From positions 1 through 38,404 of the forward strand of contig FLMG01002489.1 in NCBI GenBank assembly GCA_900088475.1: a stretch of 38,404 nt of DNA, given 5' to 3'. Of this stretch, positions 13,966 through 21,239 are shown in pieces (position 1 is the stretch's first letter; each line of letters opens with the position of its first letter). The notes beneath the pieces are model-generated. The model did not search any database, was not told the origin of the DNA, and saw only the letters and a program-made list of their open reading frames with translations. Source of the DNA: Hyphochytrium catenoides (lineage: Eukaryota; Protista; Hyphochytriomycota). Position numbers and translations under genes: made by a program.

Positions 13966-14520
13966 ATGCCCCAGCCCTCGATGGATGGAAGGTAGGAAGT
14001 GGGGTGGCTGTGCTTTCTCTCTCTCTCTCTCTCTCTCTCTTTTCCTTCTCTCTTGTCTGCCTTTTTGCACGTCTCGGCTCAATCGATCTCCCTCCTTTTC
14101 ACCTCTCTATCTTCTCTCTCTCTACTATGTATATTGAGTATACTACGCTTCCTTAGTGGCTGCTCCGTGCCCCCCTGGCTGTCTCTCTCTCTCTCTCTTC
14201 CAATCTGTTTTGGCCTCTCAACATCTCTCTCTCTCTCTCTCTCTGTGGTTAGGGTGAGGCTCATAAGCGAGGGTCTCTTCCTCCGGACGCTGACGCCGGT
14301 CACGGAGCGGCCGGAAGATGAGGGAGAGAGTGGCAGCGAGAGTCGGAGGAGAGAAGAGAGTGAAGGGAGAGAGAGAGAGGGAGCAGCGGCAAGGAAGGAG
14401 AGACTCTCCGATTTCCCGAGGGCATCATCTAAGAAGCTGAGCAAGAGCGGCAGTATTGGTGAGAGCACAAAGTAGCCTCTCTCTCTATGTCTCTTGTCCT
14501 TCTCTCCTTCTCTCCTCCTT

Positions 14521-14558
<38 letters not shown>

Positions 14559-19400: not shown

Positions 19401-21239
19401 TGTTCGTCTCTCTCTCTTCCTCTCCCTCCTCTCTCTCTTCGCCCTATGGGACGGACTGAGAGCTTTGTCCTGCTAGAGAGAAAGCAACTGGGAGACGAGG
19501 ATCAGCTCGAGTCTCTCTCTGCGGCTCTCAGCACCACCATCGCCTTCTTGAAGGAAGAAGAGGAGAGACAGCGAAGAAGAAGAAGAAGAGAAAATGCTGA
19601 GAAGAGAAGAGAGAGAAACGGCGAGAGAATGAGGAGAGAAGAAGTCGATGTCTCTTCTCTCAGTCTTCTTGCCGCTGCTGCTCCTACGAAAGGCTACTCT
19701 CTGTGTCTTTGGAAAACCAGGGGAAGAGAAAGGGAGGAGGAAAGAGAAGACAAGTGCGAAGAGTCTTTGTCTCCGTCTTCTCTTCTCTCCATCTTTCTTC
19801 GCCGTCTCTCCTATGCCAAAGTTAGGGATGCTGAAACTCTCTCTCTGGTGGAAGCGCTGAGAGAGAAAGAGGGGGAAACTAGTCTTCACACCTTGGACCT
19901 CTGCCATCAGCTGGCTCTCTCTCTTGGAGAGAGAGAAGACGGGAAAGAGAGAGAGGAAGAGTGGCTCCTTCGCTTTTGTCTCTCCTCTCTCTCTGCGACC
20001 ACCGGCCAGAAGGAGAAAGAGGGAGAAGAAGATTTTCTTTTGAAAGTAAGGAGAGCTCTTGCGCGATGCTTGGAGGCGCAAGGAAGAGAGAGAGAAGCTG
20101 AGTCTCTCTATCGTGTGTCTCTCTCTCAGTGTGAGAAGAGAGAAGGGAAAGAGCATCCCGAAACACTCTCTCTCATTCAGGATTTGGCTGTTTGTCTTCA
20201 GAGTCAAGCGCGAAAGAGTAAAAAGAGAGGGAAAGAGGCGGCAGAAGGAGGAGAAGGAGAGAGAGAGAAAGAGAGAGAAGCAGAGCGACTTCTTTGTGAT
20301 TGTTATCTTTTAAGGAAAGCAGTGCTAGGAGAGGATCATCCGCAGACATTGGAGAGCCTCTCCCTCTTGGCTCTCTCTCTCTTGGACTCTGAAGAAGGAG
20401 AGTGGAAAGGCGGAGGAGAGAAGAGAGAAAAAGAAAATGGAGGGGAGAGAGAAAGAGAGAGAGAAGAAGAGACAGAGAGACTTCTCTGGGATTGCCTAAG
20501 GACGAGGCGGCGAGTTCTTGGTCCCGATCATCCAGAGTCCACGAAGAGTTTCAACTATCTTCTCTACTGTCTTCAGAAGAGAGAGAAAGAGAGAGAGAGA
20601 GAAAGACTGCTTCGGCAAGAGGAGAGAAGGCTACAGGGTGGGAAAAAACAGAAGAGAAAGAGGGGGATAAGGAGAGAGAGAGAAGAAGAGAAGACAAGAG
20701 AAGCCAGGAGACCGGTGGTGGAAGAAGAAGAGACGACCGAAGAAGAGAGAGAAGATGAGGGAGAGGAAATAGGAGACGAACTAGATCCTCGCTCTCTCTC
20801 TATTCCCATTCGGAGCTACCTCGCCTCTCCTCCCCCGTCTCTCACTAGCAGCCCGGAAGGGAGAGGGAGAAGAGAAAAGAGAAACATTATGACGGTCTCT
20901 TCTCTCCTTCCCCGCGGAGACGAGGAGGAGGAGGACGACGAAAGGAGGAGAGAGAGAGATCTCGGCATCTCCTCTCCCTCTCTCTTACAAGTCTCTCCCT
21001 CTCTTCTTCCCGCCTCTTCTACTGCCCTTGGAAGGGGAGAGAGAAGGAGAGAGAGAGGGAAAGAAGAGTTTCCTCTCCCGACCTGGTCCTATGATTTAGT
21101 TAGGGATTCCTCTCTTCATGAGCCGCCGAGGAGAAGTCTCATCTCTTCCGTGACCAGAGATCTGCGGATTATCAAGCAGCAGCAGCAGAGAGAGGAAGAG
21201 ATCAGGAGAGAGACTGAGAGATGCTGCATTCTCATGTGA
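13966..21239 (+). CDS. Multidomain protein: Vta1-like MIT region + RelA/SpoT-like nucleotidyltransferase domain + KLC-type TPR repeats; exons 13966-13991, 14253-14458, 14754-14806, 15209-15319, 15573-15776, 16025-16098, 16511-16592, 16932-21239 (~1687 aa)
   Basis: Stop-free 1432-aa ORF 16941-21239, extended upstream by seven exons with GT..AG introns whose phases (2,1,0,0,0,2,0) join without a stop; an in-frame TAA lies upstream of ATG 13966. The first 2-3 exons are the least certain. Small in-frame introns inside the large exon cannot be excluded. Confidence 0.8.
15573..17030 (+). other. Vta1/LIP5 N-terminal (MIT)-like region, split over exons 5-8
   Basis: Spliced sequence ...ALKEGLDL...ALAQLLKKQKEREK...CKSFATRLFQTAVEEQRGGLSCRDTGRLFHLSGEVLEALKLFDPQEQLTQEEQVTLRFCKQRAQEIAQSTEKGLVP matches my recalled Vta1 pattern FAxxxFxxADxxDRxGxxxxxTAxxFxxxxxxxExLxxF...KYAxWKAxxIxKxxKEGxxP in spacing and key residues. 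Visual alignment only. Confidence 0.7.
17300..18130 (+). other. RelA/SpoT-like (alarmone synthetase-fold) nucleotidyltransferase domain
   Basis: Ordered motifs IQQ...EELQLQA...F, GPTKTVRQAKEKAERKF, RVLDFLRASLVF, IRILRVKN, FYPHVKVNV, GHICELSFH, YNAY parallel the GPxKxxxRxxEK / D-x-x-R / RVKN / GYRDxxxN / HIxExQxH / HxxY pattern of RelA/SpoT-like domains. Confidence 0.8.
18500..20585 (+). repeat. Kinesin-light-chain-type TPR repeats (~42 aa), interrupted by low-complexity insertions
   Basis: Recurrent GxDHPxTL-type turns followed by LAxCLxxQGxxxEAE: GEDHTETL, FGPDNPKTL, LGRDHPKTW, GKEHPETL, LGEDHPQTL, LGPDHPEST. Confidence 0.9.

Follow-up and report, generated by a model that had tools for sequence, protein, structure and literature searches.

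INTRODUCTION

In bacteria, enzymes of RelA/SpoT fold play a central part in stress signalling, in interbacterial toxins and in anti-phage defence. Their discussion in eukaryotes has, to our knowledge, been limited to the RSH enzymes of plastids, the RelA_SpoT heads of fungal NLRs, which are uncharacterised, and the hydrolase Mesh1. We have analysed a stretch of 38,404 nt of DNA from the protist Hyphochytrium catenoides (contig FLMG01002489.1, positions 1 to 38,404; hereafter the window), in which a gene on the + strand (13966-21239) appears to place a RelA/SpoT-fold domain between a Vta1-type MIT module and arrays of TPR repeats of the kinesin-light-chain (KLC) type. An annotation made earlier from the letters of the DNA alone (the sequence-only reading) had proposed this fusion, and the analysis presented here follows it up.

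Several described systems share one or two of these components. Tas1 (6ox6) is a (p)ppApp synthetase toxin that Pseudomonas aeruginosa secretes by its type VI system and that is paired with an immunity protein, whereas the domain studied here would be internal to a large eukaryotic protein. In fungal NLRs a RelA/SpoT-type domain is found in a eukaryote together with C-terminal TPR, WD40 or ANK repeats (PMC4986451, PMC12258605), and the protein in the window resembles them in this respect. In yeast and human the Vps4 cofactor Vta1/LIP5 has two MIT bundles, of which MIT1 binds Did2/CHMP1B and MIT2 binds Vps60/CHMP5 (PMC5141497). An MIT module is joined to a catalytic domain in VPS4, spastin, katanin, calpain-7, AMSH, USP8 and ULK3, and it is through ESCRT-III tails that the catalytic domains of these proteins are recruited to where membranes are being remodelled (PMC9477494). 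The callose synthases provide a precedent for a Vta1-like domain at the head of a large enzyme (PMC5683620). No described MIT enzyme with a catalytic domain of RelA/SpoT fold was found in the literature searched.

The protein encoded in the window is predicted to be cytosolic, with a length of ~1,690 residues. From its N-terminus it would comprise a low-complexity region, a Vta1-type MIT module, a helical linker, a RelA/SpoT-fold domain of pyrophosphokinase type and two blocks of KLC-type TPRs. Our preferred reading, to which we give slightly better than even chances, is that a single protist gene, with eight exons or more, encodes an MIT-recruited RelA/SpoT-fold enzyme with TPR arrays.

RESULTS AND DISCUSSION

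The RelA/SpoT-fold domain

The putative enzyme domain (17568-18137) lies within the last exon of the gene. Taken alone, the enzyme segment gave no relevant match to Pfam families (including PF04607, RelA_SpoT) or to PDB sequences, and a word-index protein search with residues 60-760 of the long open reading frame (ORF) returned generic TPR proteins only. With the translation of 17148-18500 as query, phmmer was run exhaustively against 1.84 billion representative proteins and found 23 (best E 2.8e-11) having in common a domain of ~130 residues. Members of this family include proteins from Guillardia theta and Teleaulax, and some have been named automatically as 'RelA/SpoT domain-containing' in UniProt. 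The consensus of the family alignment (A1) reads P-x-K...R-A-x-E-K...Y-x-G-D-V-S-R-L-x-D-x-V-R-x-S-I-V-F in its first part, and R-V-K-N-R-F...G-Y-R-D-V-x-L-N-L...H-V-C-E-L-Q-L...G-H-x-R-Y in its later part. RSH enzymes carry the motifs D-Y-I and E-I-Q-I-R-T, whereas the protist family has K-N-R-F, G-Y-R-D and H-V-C-E-L-Q.

A profile made from A1 matches Tas1 with E 1.3e-6, and no other sequence-profile match of the family is better; YwaC (6fgk) is matched with E 0.013. The match to Tas1 covers the nucleotide-binding start of the domain (motifs P-x-K...K...Y-x-G-D...D-x-x-R) and spans just ~43 residues. In the alignment with YwaC the conserved Lys, Asp, Arg, Tyr and Glu of the family line up with the motifs R-V-K, H-D-I-A-G-V-R, G-Y-R-S-L-H and A-E-I.

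The AlphaFold model generated from A1 has a pLDDT of 73, rising above 80 in the core. When this was compared with the PDB using Foldseek, the first 47 rows were all RSH synthetases. Structural alignment by VIA-align gave Z scores of 9.8 for both RelQ and RelP, 9.0 for CapRel and 8.4 for Tas1, with Rel lying within 9.8-8.4, while those for other transferases of pol-beta type were 5.6 or less. The best structural matches are thus RelQ (SAS1), RelP (SAS2), CapRel and FaRel2 (Z 9.8-9.0, Foldseek probability 1.00), and their Lys, Asp, Arg, Tyr and Glu positions align with those of the family. They differ in that the identity is just 10-16%, and in that the domain in the window contains two low-complexity inserts and has no Pfam RelA_SpoT match.

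Assignment of the predicted RelA/SpoT synthetase fold is well supported by the family profile, the modelled fold and the alignment, and we describe the domain as a putative nucleotidyltransferase of the small-alarmone-synthetase/Tas1-like type. By sequence the family lies closest to Tas1, and by predicted fold to RelQ and RelP. The RelA/SpoT-like domain proposed by the sequence-only reading is therefore borne out by the profile match to Tas1 and by the comparison of the model with RSH synthetases. That reading had also anticipated that profile searches would match Vta1, RelA_SpoT and TPR_10/12; this held for Vta1 and the TPRs (see below), and failed for RelA_SpoT, for which Pfam gave no direct match.

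In the AlphaFold database, clusters place the fold family in many protist proteins in which the partner domains vary (methyltransferase, PDZ and polycystin). The matches come from Guillardia, Reticulomyxa, Aureococcus and transcriptome-derived sets, as judged by the prefix of the UniProt accession only. A profile search with a further alignment (A3) returned nothing, its candidate list probably having been swamped by low-complexity words.

Conserved residues and the likely activity

The residues that are invariant in A1 (K20, D34 and N68) are all kept in the window protein (3/3), as are those that are nearly invariant (K12, R37, K67, H135 and E138; 5/5). K12, K20, D34, R37, K67 and E138 align with the corresponding residues of YwaC. 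Given what is known of Rel and RelQ, together with the alignment with YwaC, we take D34 to correspond to the metal-binding aspartate and E138 to the catalytic glutamate of RSH synthetases. By the family alignment the putative Mg-binding aspartate is encoded by the codon at 17667-17669, and the putative catalytic glutamate by that at 17979-17981. Overall, an active enzyme seems distinctly more likely than a pseudo-enzyme, a question to which we return below.

Exon structure of the gene

The window is eukaryotic DNA with a GC content of ~47%, the introns and intergenic DNA of which are full of (CT)n/(GA)n. Long tracts of this kind, at 13053-14050 and in most of the introns, generate ORFs that are long but spurious (S-L-S-L... 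or E-R-E-R...) on either strand, so that the length of an ORF is by itself no evidence for a gene in this genome.

On joining eight exons of the + strand between 13966 and 21239 a single open frame is obtained, of 5,064 nt and 1,687 codons, containing only the terminal stop. All seven introns are bounded by GT..AG; the donor is GTA in six of them and GTG in the other. The pyrimidine fraction lies between 0.32 and 0.59 in the exons and between 0.73 and 0.85 in six of the introns, the value for the last intron being 0.54, and the exon positions are the sole islands of this region that are not CT-rich on the + strand. A codon model trained on the downstream domains of the gene gave its top score in the modelled frame for exons 2-8, though not for exon 1 (26 nt). 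Exon 8 (16932-21239; GT..AG borders) has no internal stop in its 1,435 codons compared with 42 and 43 stops in the other two frames, and a chance ORF can be rejected on these grounds. The frame is uninterrupted over 16932-21236, and no gap of N falls within 13900-21300. The islands that are not CT-rich, the codon scores and the stop-free frame of exon 8 together make the gene model more than a matter of chance. We infer the eight-exon model, including the exons at its 5′ end, from sequence logic and homology.

Exon 1 (13966-13991) provides a putative start ATG and is followed by the donor GTAGGA; its codon score is not the best in this frame, and it is weakly supported. Exon 2 (14253-14458) is a purine-rich island with AG/GT borders and a phase that fits, which would encode a charged, low-complexity N-terminal region with no domain match. 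The next two exons have suitable borders, a fitting phase and their best codon score in the modelled frame. Exon 3 (14754-14806) is a candidate for the first helix of an MIT1-like bundle, with no Pfam match, while exon 4 (15209-15319) is rich in Ser, Pro and Ala, probably forming a loop, with no domain match. Exon 5 (15573-15776; codon score 24.4 versus -20.8 and 11.9) has two predicted helices and a linker that could form the rest of MIT1; searches of Pfam and the ESM Atlas with this exon gave no informative signal. To the eye the pattern of helices in exons 3-5 resembles that of LIP5, a tentative lead, and the exon model may be wrong at this point.

The Vta1-like MIT module

Exons 6 (16025-16098) and 7 (16511-16592) and the start of exon 8 (16932-17012, i.e. 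its first 27 codons) would encode the first, second and last helices of an MIT2-like bundle. When they are joined, the resulting unit of 79 aa (model positions 201-279) has PF04652 (Vta1) as its sole Pfam match, at a score of 29.5 bits, the cut-off being 26.8, and E 8.4e-7. The alignment pairs residues 3-71 of the unit with positions 77-142 of the 145 in the profile, and this part of PF04652 corresponds to helices 5-7, i.e. the second MIT bundle (MIT2). Translations of single exons gave no match to Pfam, as would be expected for pieces of just 24-70 residues. Since the Vta1 match is colinear across the junctions 16098/16511 and 16592/16932, and is absent from the separate pieces, it supports both of these junctions. 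Moreover, the last helix of the unit shares an uninterrupted frame with the RelA/SpoT-like domain and the TPRs, and the Vta1-like unit is thereby tied to the enzyme. A phmmer search of PDB sequences with the 79-aa unit gave no match.

The phase-consistent splicing into one protein on which the sequence-only reading was founded is thus reproduced, in eight GT-AG exons that coincide with the islands that are not CT-rich. Its Vta1-like region was recovered for the MIT2 half once the exons were joined, leaving the MIT1 half without a match. The window protein resembles Vta1/LIP5 in this MIT2 half, and differs in having neither an MIT1 nor a VSL match; the C-terminal domain of Vta1 (Vta1_C/VSL, which binds Vps4 and dimerises on it) was not found in the 1,432-residue ORF when the Pfam scan was read to E up to 1, the scope that applies to the other domains sought in this ORF. 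The enzyme and TPRs fill the C-terminal part, and an assignment as a Vta1 orthologue is rejected. We conclude that the domain is Vta1-like, but that the gene is no orthologue of Vta1. By homology, the module might bind ESCRT-III.

A CT-rich stretch that remains in frame (17013-17141) follows the MIT2-like unit. It could be a low-complexity loop or a small extra intron, for which the frame-compatible GT..AG choices are GTCCCT..CAG (129 nt) and GTCAAG..CAG (17031-17141, 111 nt). Beyond this a helical linker (17142-17567) leads to the enzyme core.

TPR arrays and domains that were sought

The enzyme domain is connected to the TPRs by a linker of ~120 residues (18138-18504) that begins with a low-complexity part and continues with helices; it matches no Pfam family and no P-loop NTPase. 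Comparison of the long ORF with Pfam gave E 5.8e-35 for TPR_12 and 9.7e-24 for TPR_10. There are seven units of the G-x-D-H-P-x-T type, starting at 18603, 18729, 19080, 19872, 20145, 20328 and 20520, and the TPR units form two blocks at about 18505-19190 and 19800-20590. Both are assigned as KLC-type, with units of 42 residues in tandem, by Pfam (TPR_12/TPR_10 in block 1) and by the signature motifs, block 2 having four units of the form G-x-[DE]-H-P-x-T. Within block 1 a CT-rich segment with frame-compatible GT..AG ends (18876-18935) could be an in-frame intron of 60 nt or a loop. The blocks are separated by a low-complexity spacer (19191-19799) that has CT-rich islands and no domain match, and the ORF closes with a charged, low-complexity C-terminal tail (20591-21239, stop codon 21237-21239), again with no domain match.

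No match to HD, TGS or ACT domains was found in the ORF or in the upstream exons, and a canonical long RSH is rejected on this basis. The KLC-type repeats, and the lack of the HD hydrolase and TGS domains of canonical RSH, are thus as the sequence-only reading described them. Nor did the ORF give any match to NB-ARC, NACHT or other STAND NTPases. The fungal RelA_SpoT NLRs have such a domain at their centre, whereas here the first TPR follows the enzyme after just ~120 residues; membership of the NLRs is therefore rejected. Among the neighbouring ORFs of the window we saw no antitoxin-like, hydrolase or other conflict-type gene. With the domain internal to a protein of ~1,690 residues, and no antitoxin or hydrolase seen adjacent to it, assignment to a toxSAS toxin-antitoxin pair is likewise rejected.

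Relatives and novelty of the architecture

The enzyme family is shared with uncharacterised protist proteins named as RelA/SpoT domain-containing (Guillardia theta L1IAA7 and L1I9C6, Teleaulax and transcriptome-derived sequences) and with P0067 and P0088, at 21-36% identity over the domain. Two environmental or metagenomic proteins, P0067 (531 aa) and P0088 (776 aa), have the same enzyme followed by TPR_12/TPR_10 repeats. The helix that lies just before the enzyme core, the last of the linker described above, is common to the window protein and P0088 (alignment A2). P0088, which derives from a JGI metagenome, begins with Met-Gly-x-x-x-Gly-Cys, resembling a signal for N-myristoylation and palmitoylation. 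This acylation-like start suggests that proximity to membranes may recur as a theme in the subfamily.

Ten long members of the family (983-1,723 aa; among P0049-P0069) have two RelA/SpoT-fold domains placed 620-1,050 residues apart, with no Pfam domain elsewhere in them. A Guillardia theta protein and a cluster that holds Teleaulax are among these, and the cryptophyte relatives differ from the window protein in having two enzyme domains and no TPRs. P0058 (994 aa, JGI metagenome) has the same enzyme domain together with an LRR-like start and, at its C-terminus, a ubiquitin domain (Pfam E 6e-11), a further sign of domain shuffling in the enzyme family.

No Vta1-like part was found in any of the relatives scanned. 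Searches of the literature for Vta1 in combination with RelA/SpoT or alarmone returned nothing relevant, although the form of the phrase may have missed 'RelA/SpoT' as printed. The sequence-only reading had held that the architecture is not known from any described protein. No relative or paper with all three parts was found, in keeping with this; yet the pairing of enzyme with TPRs recurs in P0067 and P0088, and the addition of the Vta1-like part alone appears to be new. Each of the domain families is already known, and the protist enzyme family is already annotated automatically.

Alternative explanations

A number of observations weigh against a gene that encodes an ESCRT-recruited, active enzyme. 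On the MIT side, the MIT1 half gave no Pfam Vta1 match either with exons 3-5 as modelled or after removal of a Ser/Pro-rich loop of 31 residues; AlphaFold prediction of the 79-aa unit from the single sequence gave 3-4 helices at low confidence (pLDDT 54); and the VSL match is missing, as noted above. The Vta1 family of Pfam takes in the N-termini of plant callose synthases as well (PMC5683620), so that binding of ESCRT-III is not guaranteed. On the enzyme side, three places in the family consensus have changed in the window protein: G-Y-R-D has become F-Y-P-H, E-L-Q has become E-L-S and G-H-x-x-Y is probably G-Y-x-x-Y. The domain is also interrupted by two purine-rich, low-complexity inserts, one of ~45 residues lying, in the model, between core strands three and four and the other of ~25 residues after the catalytic strand. 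None of the family members scanned reached E 0.01 or better with Pfam RelA_SpoT, the best being P0088 with E 0.06. Lastly, there is no orthologue of the whole protein among the 1.84 billion representative proteins, where the best match has 39% identity over 63 residues.

The altered consensus and the inserts bear most directly on the activity of the enzyme. The protein might be a scaffold of TPRs and MIT module in which the RelA/SpoT fold merely binds a nucleotide or a partner. The three changes fall at places that are well conserved in the family and the two long inserts break the fold; Pfam gives no direct RelA_SpoT match, and AlphaFold is confident in the core only (pLDDT 73 overall). Against such a pseudo-enzyme, eight out of eight of the invariant or nearly invariant residues are retained, among them the Asp and Glu aligned with the residues for metal binding and catalysis in RelP and YwaC. 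Furthermore, both inserts fall on gaps of every relative in A1, the first of them between core strands. On balance we regard a pseudo-enzyme as unlikely. It is very unlikely, we believe, that the region holds two genes, one small and Vta1-like, made up of exons 1-7, and another for the enzyme and TPRs whose start lies within the long ORF. There is an in-frame ATG at 17043, in the CT-rich stretch, the frame of exon 7 continues to a stop at 16710-16712, and P0067 and P0088 have no Vta1-like part, all of which would suit that arrangement. However, the Vta1 match runs colinearly from exon 7 into the first ~20 codons of exon 8 (to position 142 of 145 in the profile), and those codons share the uninterrupted frame of the enzyme. 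Exon 8 also has a good acceptor, of the polypyrimidine-CAG kind, at 16931. It is because the profile match crosses into exon 8 that we rate two genes so low.

The sequence-only reading had also raised the possibility of an immune receptor. The TPRs would then sense a ligand arising from non-self or from damage, and would release a toxic output of the RelA/SpoT domain by depletion of ATP or pyrophosphorylation of tRNA, while the MIT module would serve as guard or decoy for the ESCRT machinery. The toxins Tas1, FaRel2 and CapRel are indeed among the neighbours of the domain in sequence or structure, and the enzyme family is present in multiple copies and undergoes domain shuffling in protists. 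In fungal NLRs with TPR, WD40 or ANK repeats, RelA_SpoT is the N-terminal effector (PMC4986451, PMC12258605). By contrast, the window protein has no NB-ARC, NACHT or other STAND NTPase that could be found, no antitoxin, hydrolase or conflict-type neighbour was seen in the window, and nothing points to hypervariable repeats; moreover, TPRs of the KLC type are common in ordinary scaffolds too. The claim received no direct support, and the lack of NB-ARC or NACHT between enzyme and repeats sets the protein apart from the fungal NLRs (PMC4986451). A sensor-effector of immunity or conflict is accordingly improbable in our estimation. An MIT-recruited enzyme with TPR arrays, encoded by one gene, remains the reading that we favour.

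A possible mechanism and its significance

If the MIT-recruited enzyme is real, it could work in the following way. The MIT2-like bundle would dock onto an ESCRT-III tail, the likeliest partner being a subunit of the Vps60/CHMP5 type, since it is this type that is bound by MIT2 of Vta1. The enzyme would thereby be carried to places where membranes are remodelled, while the TPR arrays might bind a partner or keep the enzyme in an auto-inhibited state. The enzyme would then move pyrophosphate from ATP to the 3′-OH of an acceptor, which may be a nucleotide or the end of an RNA. A more specific version is that an enzyme of the alarmone-synthetase/toxSAS class, recruited by ESCRT-III, turns membrane damage, budding or abscission into a signal carried by a pyrophosphorylated nucleotide, into local depletion of ATP or into inactivation of tRNA. 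Stated so fully, the proposal is in our view improbable. Were recruitment by ESCRT-III to be true, it would constitute a new nucleotide signalling or defence output coupled to ESCRT in protists.

The locus is of interest on several counts. A Tas1-like branch of the RelA/SpoT fold seems to be spread through the protists, occurring in cryptophytes and, if the accession prefix alone is taken as a guide, in Reticulomyxa, Aureococcus and transcriptome-derived sets, and here it is joined to eukaryotic modules of targeting and scaffolding. The Vta1-type MIT module upstream leads to a concrete and testable hypothesis on where the enzyme acts. Should the enzyme be active, it would give a eukaryote a cytosolic route to nucleotides like (p)ppApp or (p)ppGpp, or to the pyrophosphorylation of tRNA; should it be inactive, the gene would still illustrate cleanly how the fold of a bacterial toxin has been domesticated within a scaffold protein of a eukaryote. 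The gene would provide a concrete link between ESCRT biology and alarmone chemistry in a eukaryote, one that rests on a single unannotated locus.

Other features of the window

The window is a draft scaffold, with runs of N (assembly gaps) at 1689-1762, 5717-5768, 8519-8558, 23723-23769, 24662-24666 and 37745-37806, all of them outside the gene studied here. Facing the 3′ end of the gene in convergent orientation is an ORF of 384 codons on the - strand (21664-22818), whose N-terminus is signal-like and which has internal repeats rich in Ser and Pro, including two copies of a unit of ~100 residues that contains S-A-L-S-W-K-E-G ... S-P-A-G-R. Further along the same strand, at 27114-28115, lies an ORF of 333 codons with no intron and with a signal-like hydrophobic stretch at its N-terminus. 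In a feature search of the ESM Atlas it resembles polysaccharide lyase family 14 (score 0.96), with clusters of fungal, mollusc, viral and bacterial proteins.

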